NCBI RefSeq assembly: GCF_902713615.1
Contig: NC_052146.1
Location: 303,506,335 to 303,570,334 of the forward strand
Source: Scyliorhinus canicula
Taxonomy: Eukaryota
Length of the DNA stretch: 64,000 nt
Direction of reading: 5' to 3'
The notes beneath the pieces were generated by a model that worked only from the letters and a program-made list of their open reading frames with translations, was not told the DNA's origin and did not search any database. Positions 35,063-61,327 of the stretch are shown here, piece by piece. Each line of letters starts with the position of its first letter. The stretch's first letter is position 1. The position numbers and the translations under genes were made by a program.

Positions 35063-36692
35063 TCAATGCTCGCTGTGAGCAGAAAGCCAACACGCCCCGA
35101 CAGCCCCGGACACACCCATATCCACTATCACAGCCTCAGAAATCAGATCGGCCTTCTTTAAATTGAACCCTCGGAAGGCAATGGGTCCTGATGGAGTCCC
35201 TGGCTGTGCACTGAGATTCTGCACGGAACAACTGATGGATGTGTTCGCAGACATCTTCAACCTCTCCCTACTCCATTCCGAGGGTCCCACCGGCTTCAAG
35301 AAGACCACCATCATAGCGGTGCCGAAGAAGAACGAGGCAACGTGCCTCAACAACCACCATCCAGTGACCTTGACATTGATCATTATGAAGTGCTTCGAGA
35401 GGTCAGCCATGAGACCCATCATAGCCATACTCCCAGAATGCCTAGGTCCACTGCAATTTGCATACTGCCACAACCGGTCCACAGCAGACGCCATCTCCCT
35501 GGCCCTACACTCATCCCTGGAGCATCTCAACAACAAAGACTCCTATGTCAGATTCCTATTCATTGACTACAGCTCCACCTTCAACACCACAATCCCAGCC
35601 AAACTCATATCAAAGCTCCAAAACCTAGGACTTGGCTCCTTCCTCTGCAACTGGATCCTTGATTTTCTGACCCACAGGCCACAATCAGTAAGAATGAAGA
35701 ACAACACCTCCTCCTCAATACTGGGGCCCCACAGGGTTGCTTACTTAGTCCCCTACTAAACACTGTATACACACACGACTGCGTGGCACAATTTGGCTCC
35801 AAGTCCATCTACACGTTTGCTGATGACACAACCGTAGCGGGTTGGATCTCAAACAACGATGAGCCAGAGTATAGGAGGGAGGTAGAGAACCTAGTGGTGT
35901 GGTGTAACAACAATAATCTCTCCCTCAACGTCAACAAAACTAAGGAGCTGGTCATCAACTTCAGGAAGCGAAGTATCGTACACACCCCTGTCAGCATCAA
36001 TGGTGCTGAGGTGGAGATGGTTAACAGCTCCAAATTCATAAGTGTGCACGTCATCAATAATCTGTCCTGGTCCACCTAGAAAGCACAACAGTACCGATAT
36101 ATACTTCCTCAGGAAACTAAGGAAATTTGACATGCCTACATTGACTCTTACCAATTTTTACAGATGCACTATCGAAAGCATCCTATCGGGCTGCATCACT
36201 GCCTGGAATGGCAATTGCTCAGCCCAAGACCGTAAGAAACTACAGAGAGTCGTGAACACAGCCCAATCCATCACGTGAAGCTGCCTCCCATCCATTGACT
36301 CTATCTACACCTCCCATTGCCTTGCGAAAGCGGGCAGCATAATCAAAGACCCTTCCCACCCAAGTTATTCTCTCTTCCAACCTTGTTTATCGGGCAGGAG
36401 ATGCAAAAGTCTGAGAACACGCACTAAGAGATTCAAAAACAGCTTCTTCCCCACTGTTACCAGACTCCTGAATGATCCTCTTATGGACTGAACTGATCTC
36501 TCCAGACATCTTCTCTACTGAGTAGTACTACACTCTGTATGTTTCACCCAATGTTTATGTCTATGTATTTACATTGTGTATTTATCGTATGTCCTATGTT
36601 TTTTCATGTATGGACGATCTGTCTGGATTGTACACAGAATAATACTTTCCACCGTACCTCTGTACACATGACAATAAATCTAAATCTAAATC
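35063..36692 (+). mobile_element. 5'-truncated Rex1/Babar LINE (RT remnant)
   Basis: KAMGPDGVPG..L..C.EQL..VF.DIFNLSL, FIDYSSTFNT, FADDTTV; (TCTAAA)n tail. Confidence 0.88.
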
Positions 36693-53226: not shown

Positions 53227-53900
53227 TGTTATGGGCCAGGATTTAGCGAACCCCAATATGTATCATGGAGTTCACCTGACCCACAACTTTTAATAGATTG
53301 TGGTATGGGGAGCACACGGCTCACTCTACAGATGTGGTACAGCAGAAATGGAAAAGTATTTTTTAAAGCAAAACAATGTTTATTCTATGAACTCAAGTTC
53401 ACCTTTTTAAAACATACAGTGAACATCTTAGCAACCATCAATTTAAATACAACCCCTAAAGAATACAACACTAAGTAATCCTTACTGAATTCCCAAACAA
53501 CATTCAGCAGACAAAAGACCTGTTTAACACAAAGATCAGGTTTAAATTCGCTATTGAGAGCAGTTACCATGTTTAAACCAGCAAATGAACATTCATAAGC
53601 TTGCAGAGATTCACACACATCCTGCTGTGATTTCAGCTTCTCCAAAACTAAAATGAAACCAAACCCACCCTGCAGCAAAAAGCCTAAAGCAAAGTAAAAA
53701 GCTGGCAGACAGCCAAGCTCCACCCACTCTCTGACATCACTGCAGTAATAAACACCCATTTCTTAAAGGTACTCTCACTACAGATATTTATATACACACC
53801 CATTTATAAACACCCATTTCTTAAAGGTACTCTCACTACAGATATGTATATACACACCCATTTATAAACACCCATTTCTTAAAGGTACTCTCGCATGACA
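53227..53900 (-). mobile_element. Solo LTR with internal ~59-bp tandem duplication
   Basis: TGTTATG...CATGACA termini; flanks AGAG/AGTG; repeated TAAACACCCATTTCTTAAAGGTACTCTC. Confidence 0.75.
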
Positions 53901-54328
53901 AGTGGCCAGAGTTAGATGGCTGCAGCCAGCTTGGAGGAATGTGGGGATGGAAGCAATAACAGAGATAGGGAGACAATGGAAAGATATGAAAACATGGCGA
54001 GTGGCGGAAATTTCCATTCTCTGCACAGATTATTGGCTGAGCTGGGAAAACCATTGTGCATCTCGCAGGCTGCATGGCCGGGTTTTCTCCAGCATTCTCT
54101 GCAGAACAAATCTGGTGGCGGAGCCCACGCTGGCAGAGAGGGGCCAGAGATATCCGACAGCCGGGAATGCCAAGAACGGGGCGCCTGTTTGATCTCCGAT
54201 ATAAAACACAGGGACTCCCCCTAAGACATACTGGACCTCATCCTCACCAATCTGCATCTCTCAGATGCATCTGTCCGTGCATCTGTTGGTGGGAGTGACG
54301 ACCACACAGTCCTTGTGGAGATGCGTTA

Positions 54329-54597
54329 TGTAGTGTGGTACACTCCTGGCATTGTCAAGAGCCTTCAGACCTCGTTAGGGACAAGAAGATGTTGATTAAT
54401 AAAGAATAGCTTGGCACCGGAGGTTGTGCAGCATGGGTCTGCCGTGGAGCAGCAACTCCCAAGTCCTTACGTGCTTCCTACATGGCTGCTAGATGTATTC
54501 TTCCCAAGACTGGACTCCACCCACTGGGGTGATCATTCACCCTCGGTGCCCACCGGACCCTCAGTCAGGTGACCCTCTTAAAGAGGCAGACACCACA
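54329..54597. mobile_element. Possible old solo LTR
   Basis: TGTAGTG...CACCACA ends and size similar to the other short LTRs; no clear TSD. Confidence 0.4.
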
Positions 54598-54819
54598 AAC
54601 GCTACACTCCTCTCCCTTTACCTTTTTTATACAATCTTCAAATTCAATTTACTAAAATCCATATTCTAAATAATATATAAGTTAGACATTTGAAAATCAA
54701 AGTAGCGATTGTTCAGTGTTCAGTTCTTGAGATTTGCAGTTCAACATAACACTTCTCCTAGTATGTTTCAACTATATACAGTTCCAAATACAGTCTTGCA
54801 TGAGATTCTACCACACAGG

Positions 54820-55240
54820 TTTGCTGCTTTTTGAGTCCAGTTCTAGACTCTGCGCTGATCAGGTGTGATATACTTTACTCTGCGGACGGTGTCACTCTCA
54901 AATCCTTTATTAATCCTTTTTTCTGTCACGCACCTTACTCTACAATGCATGGCGGTACCATCATCACAATACAATGCAATCTGTGCCTTGACAGCTCATT
55001 CACAAACTCAATCTGTCACATGCGAAAGAGTGGTCATGGTACCCTGTTTCTGGTACTTAGGCCATGGGATAAAGTTCCTTTTCTTTCTCGCATTTCTATT
55101 CAGCATCTTTTCCATCGACCATGTCATATTAGTTCTTGTGCTTTTCTATTGGTGTGACCGTTTCAGTAATCTTGGCCTGGCACTTAATCTCAGTTTCCTT
55201 CTGTCTGAATTGTTCCTCTGTCTACATCTCTCCTGCACAA
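54820..55240 (-). pseudogene. SYCP1-like processed fragment
   Basis: ETEIKCQAKITETVTPIEKHKN*YDMVDGKDAE resembles human SYCP1 EIDKRCQHKIAEMVALMEKHKHQYDKIIEERDSE; stops and frameshifts. Confidence 0.6.
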
Positions 55241-55244
55241 AGTC

Positions 55245-55600
55245 CTTCATTTCACAACCTCTTTCTTTCAGCTTTTGCATCAAACAATCTTCTGCTTGTT
55301 TTGCATCGACTTTCTTCACCACCTGTATTTTGCACTACACCCTCCATCAGCTGCAGTTTGAGCTAAGCCAGTTCCAGCTCCATCCCCTTTATCTTGATAT
55401 TCATCTGAAGTACTCTTCGATGAACTGACCAATTTAAATGGCCCATCTTTGTTAAGAGTTCTCTGCAGCGATTGCAGTGTTCAACCGTTTCCAAATTATT
55501 TTCCAACTCTGCTTTATTTCCCAACTGTGGCCTTCCCAATCTCTCACTCAGTTGAGGGCTGATTTATTTGTATCTGATGATTCTTGGTTTCTGATTCTCA
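55245..55600 (-). pseudogene. RABGAP1/RABGAP1L-like C-terminal coiled-coil processed fragment
   Basis: YK*ISPQLSERLGRPQLGNKAELE...VEHCNRCRELL...GMELELA*LKLQLME..CKIQ versus RABGAP1 YKQICSQLSERLEKQQTANKVEIE...VDDCERCREFF...EMELELAQTKLQLVEAECKIQ. Confidence 0.7.
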
Positions 55601-55903
55601 TTCTCAGAACGTACAAGCTTTACTCTGAGTCCATTTGCCTCGGTGTAAACGTTGCTCCATCAGCATTCTGACCTTGATTTCCAGCTTTGAGAGAAATTCC
55701 TGATCCACTGACATTTCCACCAGCTTAACGCTCCGTTCCTGGACACATTGTAATTCTTCCATTAACCACTGCAGTTTTTTGTTTCTATTAAAATAACTTT
55801 CTCTTGGCAAAGAGAATCACAATCATTCTTTTGTCCATCGCTTTGCTTGTGCAATCTATTCAGTTATCCATTTCTGAGTTTCTTCCTGGCTGAATCGATT
55901 ATT

Positions 55904-56120
55904 TAAAAAAAAATTTAGTGTACCCAATTCATATTTTCCAATTAAGGGGCAATTTATCGAGGCCAATCCACCTACCCTGCACATCTTTGGCTATTTGGGG
56001 CGAAACCCATGCAAACACTGGGAGAATGTGCAAACTCCACATGGACAGTGATCCAGAATCGAACCTGGGACCTTGGCGCCATGAGGCAGCAATGCTAACC
56101 ACTGCGCCACCGTGCTGCCC
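55904..56120 (-). mobile_element. V-SINE inserted into the pseudogene mosaic
   Basis: 13-bp TSD TGAATC(G/A)ATTATT. Confidence 0.88.
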
Positions 56121-56163
56121 AAGATGAATCAATTATTCCCTTCTGACAATATTTGTTAACAAT

Positions 56164-56770
56164 CTCTCCCTTCTCAAGCTCTGCATGTTTTCAGAGAACT
56201 GACGGATTCCTTTTGTAGTTACAACAGACTCCAATTCTACATTCATGATTTATTTCTGCTTGTGATATTTATTGGACAGTTTGCTGAATTGCTAACTTGT
56301 TCCAACAGCTGTGATCTCTCTTTTGGTTTGCCTGTTGCTAAGTCCTCCTCAGCACCCTCAACACCGCACAATTTCTGCCTCTCTGCAGAATGCCAAGGCC
56401 TCTGGTCCATTTGTGTTCTCCACACGACTAGTAGCTCGATCATTCAGTTGGACCACAATAGAATTCCCAATAATGGCTCTGATAAATGATTTCTCGGCTC
56501 TGATTTCTTCTTCAACAATACGGTGACTCTTGCAGTAGATGTTCCAGGGTGTCCTATGTCGGCACCATGGATTAAATCTTTGATGTCTTTCACTCTGAGA
56601 CTAGCAGTTCTCTCACCCATTACAAAACTGATAGCATCCATTACATGGGGATTTCCTTGGCTCTTCGAATTCCAGGCTATGACCATTGGTGTTGAGTTTT
56701 GCTGTGCTTTTTCTCTCAACTCTTTTAGACTTTTATTAACATCTTCATGCTCTAACTCCAGTTCCTTCAC
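56164..56770 (-). pseudogene. SMC1B: SMC1B-like processed pseudogene fragment (exon-6-like tail followed by exons 2-4)
   Basis: VMDAISFVMGERTASLRVKDIKDLIHGADIGHP...KSFIRAIIG...GRNC...KPKERSQLLEQVS...KHAELEKGE; intronless across exon 2/3/4 junctions; frameshifts and stops; VMDA, FVMGE, GAxIG and NC residues fit SMC1B better than SMC1A. Confidence 0.8.
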
Positions 56771-56775
56771 CGCTT

Positions 56776-57147
56776 ACTGGTGAAGTCGAGGATCCAGTTG
56801 CAGAGGGAGGAGCCATGTCCTAGGTTTTGGAGTTTGGATATGAGCTTGTTGGGGATTATGGCGTAGAAAGCGTAGCTGTAGTCAATGAATAGGAGTCTGA
56901 CGCAGGTGTCCCTGTTGTTGAGATGCTCCAGGGATGAGTGGAGGGCCAGGCAGATGGTGATTGCTGTGGACCGGGGTTGTGGTGTTATGCGACTTGCAGT
57001 GGATCTAGGTATTCCGGGAGTATGGAGTTGATGTGCCTCATGACCAACCTCTCGAAGCACCTCATAATGCTCAATGTCAAGGCCACCGGATGGTCGTCAT
57101 TGAGGCACGTTGCCTGGTTCTTCTTTGGCACCGCTATGATGGTGGTC
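56776..57147 (-). mobile_element. Rex1/Babar LINE RT fragment
   Basis: [27 protein letters not shown]; LFIDYS; same family as 35063-36692. Confidence 0.85.
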
Positions 57148-57759
57148 TCTTCCTCTGAGCTCCAGCGTTGCCTGCGCTTTGAGGTCTTCAGTTGCTTACA
57201 AACCTCCGAGCTCGAGTTACCCTCCATCTGGCGGCTTCTCTGACATTCAGATTCTGGCAGTTTTAGACCTTTTCTCGAATACCAAAAGCCCACGAGTCAT
57301 GCCTTGAAATTCCACGTTTGGATAATTCCTCCTGATCAGCTGCTCTTTTCAATGTGAAGAGTGTGAATTTCCCCCTGTCCCCCTGTCCCCCTGCCCCCTC
57401 CACCCCACCTGGAAAAAATAGACGGTGCGAGGTTCATGGGTAAGACTCCCGGAATCGAGGCTCTGGTGCCATTTTTGTGAAGGAGGGGAGACTTTCCGAT
57501 GTAGCGAAAATTCGGGCCAGTGTGTAATGACCGGGTTAGCTCGTTCTCCTTTCTTTCCATCGTGACACACGTTTCCCTGCAGTAATAATTCTGATCCACT
57601 GGCATGCTGCTTTTTCCATGAACACTGACACAAAGTTGTTTGCAACCTCCAAGCCAAGTCATACATATAAGAGCAGAGGGAACGGGAAGAGACCATTTTC
57701 TCTCTGCTCTGCTCCGTCATTCAGTCAGATCATGGCTGTGATCTAATTTCATAAGAATT

Positions 57760-59432: not shown

Positions 59433-61327
59433 GGGCGGGATTCTCCGACCCCACGCAGGGTCGGAGAATCGGCCGGTAGCGGCGTTATTCCCGCTCCCGC
59501 AGGGTTTTTAAATCTCTGACCGGCCAAAAACCGGCGCTGTGCAAATCCCGCCGGCAGCCTCTGAAAACAGCTGGCGCCGGCGGGATTTCATTTTTTTTTT
59601 AGATTCCACAAATCTCCGGCCCGGATGGGCCGAAGTCCCGCCGACGTGGCCACGGGTCACGTCGGCGAAAATCACAGTTGCTTTAAAATGGCGTCAACCA
59701 TTGATGATGGTTGACGCCGTTCAGTGTCGGGGGGTGGGTTGCGGCATCGGGGGGGGGGGTGGGTTGCGGGTATCGGGGGGGGGTGGGTTGCGGCATCGGG
59801 GGGGGGTGGGTTGCGGGTATCGGTGGGGGGTGGGTTGCGGCATCGGGGGGGGTGGGTTGCGGCATCGGGGGGGGTGGGTTGTGGCATCGGGGGGGTGGGT
59901 TGCGGCATCGGGGGGGTGGGTTGCGGCATCGGGGGGGTGGGTTGCGGCATCGGAGGGTGGGTTGCGGCATCGGGGGGTGGGTTGCGGCATCCGGGGGTTG
60001 CGGCATCGGGGGGGGGCATCGGGGGGGGGGGGTTGCGGCATCGGGGGGGTGGGTTGCGGCATCGGGGGGGTTGCGGCATCGGGGGGGGTTGCGGCATCGG
60101 GGGGTGGGTTGCGGCATGGGGGGGGGTTTGGGGGCAGCGGCGTGCAGAGAGGGGGGCGACGGATGCCCTGGGCCAACGCACCGTCGCCCCCCCCCTCTGT
60201 ACGCCGCTGCCCCCTACCCCAACCCCCCCCTCACCACCCCTACCTCCCTCCAACGCCCCTACCCACCACCCCTACCCCCCTCCCCACCACCCCTACCCCC
60301 TTCACCACCCCTACCCCTCTCCAACGCCGCACCCCCCCACCCCCCACTAACGCCGCACCCCCCCCCCCACTAACGGAGGAAGGAAGGGGGGGAGGAGGAA
60401 GGAGGGGGGACGGAGGAAGGAAGGGGGGGGAGGAGGAAGAAGGGGGGAGGAGGAGAGAGGGGGGGTGTGGGTACCGGCCTTCAGAGGGAGGGGGACGGGG
60501 TGTGGGTACCGGCGTTGAGGGGGGGACCCGGCGTTGAGAGGGGGGGTTGCGGCGATGAGGGGGGGTTGTGGCGTTGAGGGTGGGGGGTTGCGGCGTTGCG
60601 AGAGATGGGGGGCGGCGTTGGAGGGGGGTAGGGGTGGTGGGGAGGGGGGGTAGGGGTGGTGGGGAGGGGGGTAGGGGCGTTGGAGGGAGGTAGGGGTGGT
60701 GAGGGGGGGTGGTTGGGGTAGGGGGCAGCGGCGTACAGAGGGGGGGGGGCGATGGTGCGTTGGCCCAGGGCATCCGTTGCCCCCCCTCTCTGCACGCCGC
60801 TGCCCCCAAACCCCCCCCATGCCGCAACCCACCCCCCAATGCCGCAACCCCCCCCCCCGATGCCCCCCCCCCGATGCTGCACCCCCCCGATGCCGCAACC
60901 CCCCCCCCCGATGCCCCCCCCGATGCCGCAACCCCCCGGATGCCGCAACTCCCCCCCCCGATGCCACAACCCCCCCCCGATGCCGCAACCCCCCCCCCCC
61001 CCGATGCCGCAACCCCCCCCCCCCCCGATGCCGCAACCCCCCCCCCCCCCCGATGCCGCAACCCCCCCCCCCCCCCAAATGCCGGGTCGGTCTCTCTCCT
61101 CCCCCCCCCAAACGCCGGGTCAGTCTCTCTCCTCCTCGTCCTCCAAAAAACGCCGGGCCTCACCACTTCCGCAGCTGGTGAAACTGACGCGTATCGCGTC
61201 AGTCAGCTGCTGGCCCCTCCGGGAACGGAGAATAGCGGCCTAAAAGAAGGCCCCGACGCCGGAGTCATGTACACCGATTTTTCTCGCCGGAAATCGGCGT
61301 TACGACGGTCTGCAGAGAATTTCGCCC
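59433..61327. mobile_element. 1.9-kb Harbinger-like element carrying a large internal palindrome of G-rich tandem repeats
   Basis: TIRs GGGCGGGATTCTCC / AGAGAATTTCGCCC; perfect TSD CTA; inverted arms ~59725-60330 and ~60608-61078. Confidence 0.85.

Follow-up and report, generated by a model that had tools for sequence, protein, structure and literature searches.

The stretch of catshark DNA analysed here (Scyliorhinus canicula, assembly GCF_902713615.1, contig NC_052146.1, forward-strand positions 303,506,335 to 303,570,334; 64,000 nucleotides (nt), hereafter the window) carries, within an intron, a minus-strand insert of about 2 kb made up of intronless, co-oriented coding fragments that are broken by more than 20 stops and frameshifts. 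Judged by sequence comparison, the insert appears to be composed of spliced pieces from at least three genes: SMC1B, RABGAP1 and, probably, SYCP1 (Table 1). In the 5' to 3' direction of the minus strand the order is a fragment of a long interspersed element (LINE) reverse transcriptase (RT); SMC1B exons 6 (3' half), 2, 3 and 4; a segment termed X; RABGAP1 exons Z (3' part), A, B, Y and Z (5' part); an SYCP1-like piece; and a tail. The minus strand is purine-rich and coding-like from end to end between 57150 and 54600, and its purine skew extends to about 54550. An antisense insertion of decayed, intronless and co-oriented fragments had been described at this place by an earlier first-pass annotation made from the letters alone, and that description is borne out. 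The insert is dead as sequence and has no evident function at the locus. The stretch is present in samples from several studies of the species, and is therefore not a one-off assembly slip.

Stop-free pieces of the insert were used for library searches, and longer comparisons were made by frameshift-tolerant alignment of protein to DNA with shuffle controls. Look-ups of three pieces in the ESM Atlas returned generic coiled-coil noise only, and peptide strings from the insert that were sought in the literature were not found there.

Table 1. Features of the insert, listed 5' to 3' on the minus strand (window coordinates)
Feature	Position	Strand	Evidence or remark
Internal LINE RT open reading frame fragment	56786..57148	-	Cut inside the RT domain at the SMC1B start; blastn; Pfam RVT_1, E 0.022 (weak)
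SMC1B exon 6, 3' half (shark residues 328 to ~370)	56657..56785	-	Ends at exon 6 border
SMC1B exon 2	56468..56656	-	Begins at exon 2 border straight after exon 6
SMC1B exon 3	56357..56467	-	Fused to exon 2 without intron
SMC1B exon 4	56164..56356	-	Terminates at exon border
Segment X, ~296 nt, purine-rich, coding-like, split by the short interspersed element (SINE)	55634..56163	-	No significant match in the comparisons made
SINE (56120-55905) with 13-bp target duplication	55891..56137	-	14 other copies in the window, 69-91% identity
RABGAP1 exon Z (fourth-from-last coding), 3' part	55564..55633	-	Terminates at exon border
RABGAP1 exon A (third-from-last coding)	55492..55563	-	z 8.7; tblastx/blastn against L003, L006, L009
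RABGAP1 exon B (penultimate coding)	55321..55491	-	z 8.0; ends exactly at border
RABGAP1 exon Y (fifth-from-last coding), after B	55250..55320	-	DNA match 36/42
RABGAP1 exon Z, 5' part (~first 30 nt, possibly to 55183)	55220..55249	-	~24/30 nt against L006
SYCP1-like core (C-terminal coiled coil near human residue 700)	55123..55206	-	Pfam SCP-1, PDB
Purine-rich remainder, then AT-rich tail with a short terminal A run	54620..55122	-	Purine skew

Rotated exon order in SMC1B and RABGAP1

The SMC1B identity that had been proposed for 56770-56164 is confirmed for 56785-56164 by Pfam, PDB and tblastn comparisons. A 109-residue piece (56773-56447) matches the Pfam family SMC_N (expectation value, E, 5.9e-8) and human SMC1A in PDB (E 6.6e-12), and the whole of 56785-56164 matches ten elasmobranch SMC1B proteins, gathered by a representative search and a follow-up search, with tblastn E values of 1e-23 to 8e-28. 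The PDB alignment to SMC1A covers residues 38-90 only, and the exon 6 part is not SMC1A-like, which identifies SMC1B as the parent. Shark SMC1B residues 37-205 map to 56656-56164, where 96-108 of 170 residues are identical (tblastn and frameshift-aware alignment). Residues 328 to about 370 map directly upstream, to 56785-56657; here 22 of 28 residues are identical to basking-shark SMC1B by tblastn (sum E 3.8e-8), and 30 of 42 by frameshift-aware alignment.

The SMC1B exon map was drawn from a quail locus (L002) and a 67-kb sawfish locus (L007), together with a Logan genomic contig (L001). In all three, G37 is the first residue of exon 2; exon 4 ends in ...KEE205 followed by gt, and exon 6 (residues 286-371) in ...EESQ followed by gt, as observed in the quail and sawfish loci. 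Exons 2 and 3 are separated by some 400 nt in L001 but adjoin in the window, showing that the copy was spliced; the exon 2 DNA of the window is 77% identical to that of L001. At 56657/56656 the end of exon 6 meets the start of exon 2, with both sides on exon borders, as in a back-splice. At its other end the SMC1B piece stops at 56164, where the quail and sawfish loci confirm the exon 4 end that the first-pass annotation had placed there. Downstream of 56164 no SMC1B was detected, full-length proteins scoring below reversed-protein controls, and exons 5 and 6, sought beyond exon 4 and past the SINE, reached z scores below 1.5, so that a continuation as either exon was rejected. An exon 1 placed before exon 2 was likewise rejected, since tblastn gives exon 6 at that position. 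Exons 1, 5 and 7 onwards were not found in the insert, exon 5 being missing although it lies inside a circle of exons 2 to 6.

The span of the SMC1B gene differs widely among the species compared: 295 kb in catshark, 67 kb in sawfish (Pristis pectinata, L007) and 29 kb in quail. The very long introns of shark SMC1B are relevant to its propensity for back-splicing or trans-splicing.

The RABGAP1-like piece suggested earlier is also real. Exon A has 13 of 21 residues identical, and neither its score nor that of exon B is reached by any of 300 shuffles. The blastn match of exon B (79-81% identity over 63 nt, E 2e-10 to 8e-9; 81% and 2e-10 at best) stops at the last base of the exon, the next two bases being gt in L004, L005 and L006. 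The parent was reached indirectly: a word-indexed protein search with the piece gave nothing, protein searches with the short RABGAP1-like pieces failed to reach full-length RABGAP1, and a Pfam search of the coil exons gave no family name. A degenerate DNA motif pattern found four vertebrate contigs of two paralogue types in metagenomes, and one exon peptide, identical letter for letter to a snowy-owl protein fragment, led to a 20-kb Gouldian-finch locus (L009). The two bird loci L006 and L009 carry exons T, U, V, Y, Z, A, B and the terminal exon in that order with canonical splice sites. The gene is named RABGAP1 because exon T is identical to human RABGAP1 at 42 of 43 positions (PDB 4NC6, E 6.9e-23), with RABGAP1L (3HZJ) scoring lower. 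As a side observation, L003, L005 and L006 are JGI metagenome contigs (Ga0065711_*, Ga0181612_165769) of up to 51 kb that represent vertebrate host DNA, one type being bird-like, and they bear exons of both RABGAP1 and RABGAP1L.

The RABGAP1 exons of the window, like those of SMC1B, stand in rotated order. Directly before exon A lies the 3' part of exon Z, with 15 of 18 nt matching positions 36-53 of exon Z in L006 and 16 of 17 nt matching up to the exon end in L005; its alignment at the protein level is weak. After exon B comes exon Y (36 of 42 nt at 55298-55258; protein z 3.1, reached by 4 of 300 shuffles), and straight after Y the start of exon Z as found in L006 (protein z 2.5). This gives a second back-splice-type join at 55321/55320, in which the end of B is exact and Y runs from its first base by way of a weaker 20-nt stretch. 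With an artificial B+Y+Z reference the alignment crosses the join and takes in Y from its first base, whereas with a reference of B plus the last exon it stops at the end of B. The sequence after B had also been considered as a retained intron beginning with GT, and this was rejected because it is the start of exon Y. The order of the window is thus a rotation of a four-exon unit, Y-Z-A-B, amounting to roughly a single lap that is broken within exon Z; in birds the unit measures 459 nt. Z, A, B and Y adjoin one another in the window, as against spacings of 0.5-1.3 kb in L006 and L009. Alignment with shuffles found the terminal exon and exons T, U and V to be absent from the insert. Neither Y nor Z occurs in a second copy, and the RABGAP1 piece has no internal repeat, so that a double lap of the RABGAP1 circle was rejected.

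Colinear alignment of all segments to one known gene, a possibility that the first-pass annotation had allowed for, is not what is found: SMC1B stops at exon 4, SMC1B and RABGAP1 are both rotated, and the RABGAP1 and SYCP1 matches lie downstream of SMC1B. The rotated orders might also have arisen in DNA, if colinear processed pseudogenes had been scrambled later by tandem duplication and deletions or by inversions, and the insert is indeed old, with many indels such as deletions of 18 to 27 nt inside exons Y and B. Scrambling of this kind, however, would not produce two separate joins that each have exon borders on both sides, and no remnants of the exons in between (SMC1B 1, 5 and 7 onwards; RABGAP1 terminal exon or V) are seen; we consider it highly improbable.

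Other pieces of the insert, their joins and related copies

The 3' piece is probably SYCP1-like, SYCP1 being the top family in two libraries and the one predicted by the first-pass annotation. A 30-residue piece (55221-55132) matches Pfam SCP-1 (PF05483) at profile positions 690-713 with E 0.0047 and a score of 15.5 bits, below the gathering cut-off of 23. Among 177,635 PDB sequences the two best matches are human SYCP1 (6F63, E 0.038) and mouse SYCP1 (4YTO, E 0.27), with 14 of 25 residues identical, and the next codons prolong the match (...Y-D past a stop). About 20 pieces were tested, and the match is weak once this number is allowed for. The earlier reading of this piece is thus weakly confirmed as to family, at a score short of the Pfam threshold. 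Pieces neighbouring the core gave no matches, and the alternative that the 3' block is a LINE ORF1 found no support, SYCP1 having emerged instead. The remainder and tail (55122-54620), which had no matches in Pfam or PDB, may be more SYCP1 followed by 3' untranslated region (UTR).

A different outcome was obtained for segment X. The first-pass annotation had labelled this interval (56163 to about 55634) as a first SYCP1-like piece, and it matches neither SYCP1 nor any other sequence compared. No significant match was found to SMC1B exons 5 or 6, the sawfish SMC1B locus, RABGAP1 exons T, U or V, Pfam or PDB. Two specific candidates were rejected: the end of the RABGAP1 TBC domain or exons U and V (z -1.0 to 0.9), and a cryptic exon of the SMC1B locus, for which the 67-kb sawfish locus holds no match.

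The LINE fragment is 85% identical over 366 nt to a copy at 35302-35665 of the window, which carries on with the remaining RT, and the fragment may run further 5' in decayed form. LINE sequence gives way to SMC1B within exon 6, and the two share a few bases at most where they meet. The SINE that splits segment X has a 13-bp target duplication of its own (56137-56125 and 55903-55891), from which it follows that it arrived later than the insert, as had been supposed; the summed contig depth over it is very high.

Several observations bear on whether these pieces arrived together. The LINE RT, SMC1B, RABGAP1 and SYCP1-like pieces all lie on the minus strand and are butt-joined, and three of the joins between pieces fall inside exons (LINE to exon 6, X to exon Z, and exon Z to SYCP1). 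A scan of the internal joins found no poly(A), LINE tail or duplicated target at any of them, and no inserted piece has a 3' end of its own. For the insert as a whole, the ends were searched for poly(A) and a target-site duplication (TSD), as the first-pass annotation had proposed. The search yielded a run of six A's at 54627 and a single TSD candidate, a 28-nt direct repeat (57615-57588 and 54832-54805; 21 of 28 positions, chance E about 0.2), which has an A-rich start, brackets the LINE fragment together with the mosaic and is not significant by itself.

Sequences related to the mosaic occur elsewhere in the catshark and in a second species, whose samples hold 4-7% of the 31-mers of the stretch. 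In both species, the depth of contigs of at least 80% likeness over 54466-55871 is 2-30 times that of the unique flanks, and it dips to about two contigs at 55206-55279. Some of these contigs look like single parental exons with unlike flanks. Others are intronless and span X or Z through A and B at 84-96% identity, in both species, and the remainder and tail (55122-54620) are covered by related contigs as well. The whole mosaic might be a high-copy repeat, but the depth would also be explained by the exons of the parents together with other retrocopies.

Independent retro-insertions that adjoin or nest, for example an SYCP1-like retrocopy hit later by RABGAP1 and SMC1B copies, would account for a contig depth that varies from block to block and falls so low at one place, and would also fit the failure to find a TSD for the whole insert. 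Such a pile-up, however, would not lead one to expect co-oriented, butt-joined pieces that lack their own 3' ends and whose joins are free of poly(A), LINE tails and duplicated targets, nor intronless contigs in both species that span Z-A-B and run from X into B. We regard it as quite improbable.

Part of the related sequence is transcribed. Variants lacking about 230-250 nt are present as both DNA and RNA: the points 55562 and 55792, and 55565 and 55816, are joined in an RNA contig (run X20) and in a DNA contig from the second species, with the end of X and the first Z piece skipped, which suggests that the mosaic has a deletion variant and that this variant is transcribed. In addition, one oligo-dT RNA run contains strand-specific reads from diverged relatives on 55280-55501 and 55724-55871. 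These reads fall on X, at 55744-55871, and on RABGAP1 exons A and B, with none on the SYCP1 core, which suggests that the parent of X is an expressed gene other than SYCP1.

The same transcripts, the RNA contig that links 55884-55792 to exon A and the several related DNA copies in two species might be taken to mean that the insert was retrocopied from a genuine family of exon-shuffled meiotic coiled-coil genes transcribed elsewhere in the genome, or is itself a decayed member of that family, an alternative put forward in the first-pass annotation. Reads on exons A and B are, however, expected from the ubiquitous RABGAP1 mRNA; the rotated order breaks the logic of the parental reading frames; an SMC head without its partner half, joined to a LINE RT fragment, makes an implausible protein; and the window copy has its many stops and frameshifts. 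With three joins inside exons and no reading frame, a chimeric gene as the source is hardly credible.

Proposed template switching on circular RNAs

Of particular interest is the recurrence of the same kind of join in two unrelated genes. In each, the end of a downstream exon is joined to the start of an upstream one at exon borders, and only exons from inside the putative circle are present, which is the signature of pseudogenes derived from circular RNAs (circRNAs). The butt-joined and co-oriented pieces, free of internal poly(A) and linked to a LINE RT fragment, argue for template jumping during LINE reverse transcription. We therefore favour, with a probability of about 0.62, the reading that the insert is a dead processed chimeric insertion from a single reverse-transcription event, in which several germline RNAs, two or more of them circular, would have served as templates one after another. 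Serial RT switching among germline circular RNAs had been proposed from the letters alone; the anatomy, with two rotated joins and the fusions between pieces, favours it, while one of the four pieces labelled at that time is without support.

Under this reading the templates would be back-spliced circles of SMC1B exons 2-6 and of RABGAP1 exons Y-Z-A-B. Synthesis of cDNA would have started on the 3' pieces, namely the tail and the SYCP1-like sequence, and continued for about one lap of the RABGAP1 circle, then along X, then along part of the SMC1B circle, from exon 4 back through the back-splice of exon 6 to exon 2 and into exon 6, before the enzyme ended on a LINE RNA. A LINE-type reverse transcriptase would thus have entered each circle, run for at most about one lap and jumped to the next RNA, and the product would have become fixed in the germ line and later been copied or duplicated a few times. 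The near-exact single lap of RABGAP1 suggests that the enzyme may come to a halt when it runs into its own product or the starting duplex.

The exact stop of the SMC1B piece at the exon 4 donor, in front of foreign sequence, is what would be expected if linear scrambled RNAs had been retrocopied instead, that is, products of trans-splicing or exon repetition, within one gene or between genes, that carried the 6-to-2 and B-to-Y joins. In human chimeras of LINE-1 and mRNA, the gene exons break off at splice donors that precede very long introns, which has been read as trans-splicing (bioRxiv 10.1101/2025.02.02.635956), and the huge size of shark SMC1B (295 kb in catshark) is in keeping with such a route. 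Linear templates of this kind do not, however, account for the three joins that lie inside exons; the RABGAP1 piece, about one lap broken inside exon Z, is explained by a circle and not by exon repetition; and no exon from outside either putative circle is present. We consider linear templates unlikely.

Several points weigh against reverse transcription of circular templates. The exact exon 4 stop is not predicted by a random template jump and hints at a splicing step, either trans-splicing or a splicing intermediate. The LINE piece stands at the 5' end, where classical LINE chimeras have the LINE at the 3' end, and for the insert as a whole neither a convincing TSD nor poly(A) was found beyond the 21/28 candidate. 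The exon maps come from ray and bird loci and not from the S. canicula genome, and both rotated joins are known from the assembly sequence only. The circular templates are read from exon order. The case for SYCP1 is a 25-residue match under the Pfam cut-off, and segment X and the tail match nothing among the comparison sequences. Finally, the depth data reveal relatives of the pieces and would fit more than one history of amplification and deletion.

Both elements of the proposed mechanism are known from other organisms. Pseudogenes derived from circRNAs are known from the mouse and human genomes (Dong et al. 2016, Cell Res 26:747, PMC4897178), among them the mouse circRFWD2 family, which shares an exon 6-exon 2 junction and has few terminal A's; the reverse transcription and insertion of circRNAs was there termed 'mysterious' (PMC4897178). 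Bipartite and tripartite chimeric retrocopies formed by template jumps have been described as well, the tripartite ones, with double jumps, in Magnaporthe (PMC2104539). A literature search found circRNA-derived pseudogenes and chimeric retrocopies, with no case that combines them and no insert made from more than one circRNA. The 'undescribed system' of the first-pass annotation is therefore overstated, both kinds having been described (PMC4897178, PMC2104539); what looks new is their occurrence together in one insert, and in a shark.

The insert resembles circRNA-derived pseudogenes in being intronless, in its non-colinear junctions from downstream to upstream exons, in holding only exons that reside in the circle, in having little or no poly(A), in its association with retrotransposon sequence and in being present in more than one genomic copy. 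It differs in that two genes contribute to one insert and are fused to each other, to other cDNA and to LINE RT, and in that the host is a shark rather than a mammal and the circles are read from sequence. With the Buzdin-type and Magnaporthe LINE chimeras (PMC2104539) it shares the direct, co-oriented fusion of cDNAs from different RNAs, a LINE part and multiple jumps. In those classical chimeras, however, the 3' end is formed by a LINE or an element with poly(A) and the 5' end by a full-length small RNA, and TSDs are clear, whereas the insert has its LINE piece internal and 5', at least five pieces, rotated exons of spliced mRNAs and no TSD or poly(A) found. The human LINE-1/mRNA chimeras (bioRxiv 10.1101/2025.02.02.635956) are similar in that their exons halt at a splice donor before foreign sequence and in their very long introns; they consist, however, of first exons upstream of a near-full-length LINE-1, with TSD and poly(A), in contrast to the internal, rotated exons and upstream LINE seen here. 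An ordinary processed pseudogene of a meiotic gene would likewise be spliced, decayed and intronic and would have germline-expressed parents, but unlike such a pseudogene the insert is non-colinear and multi-gene and is without the 3' UTR and poly(A) of its first parent.

The same circRNA signature is thus seen twice, in two unrelated genes and in a cartilaginous fish, and the pieces are physically joined to other cDNA and a LINE RT fragment, which speaks for a LINE-type enzyme that jumped between templates, with a suggested rule of about one lap per circle. We offer as a tentative generalization, which may well prove wrong, that the LINE-type RT of the shark germ line copies circRNAs for about one lap each and links several of them, along with other RNAs, in a single insertion, and that the resulting heritable, exon-shuffled mosaics can then be duplicated and transcribed. 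If true, the insert would be the first recorded concatemer of multiple circRNAs, and 'one lap then jump' would be a readable footprint of the way in which circular templates are handled. The insert also shows one way in which exons of different genes can come to be shuffled into new DNA arrangements without recombination. The main interest of the insert lies in its being a natural record of the reverse transcription of circular RNA.

Repeats in the neighbourhood of the insert

Other repeats of the window include a relative of the LINE fragment. A longer copy of the same LINE family lies on the plus strand at 35200-36400, and its RT open reading frame passes the point at which the fragment at 57148-56786 is cut; it can serve as a local reference for the family. 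On the plus strand at 54170-54391 is a sequence that resembles the end of a LINE endonuclease domain (...LDLILTN...SDH...); it has a depth of about 1000-2000 and no Pfam match, and its orientation is opposite to that of the RT fragment across the mosaic. The interval 53800-53947 is an extremely abundant repeat, with a summed contig depth of about 1e5 in both species and RNA reads on both strands. Further away, the interval 59500-60500 is a GC-rich (up to 69%), low-complexity array with long open frames on both strands, Gly/Val/Cys-rich and Pro/Thr-rich, which looks like a tandem repeat rather than a gene.

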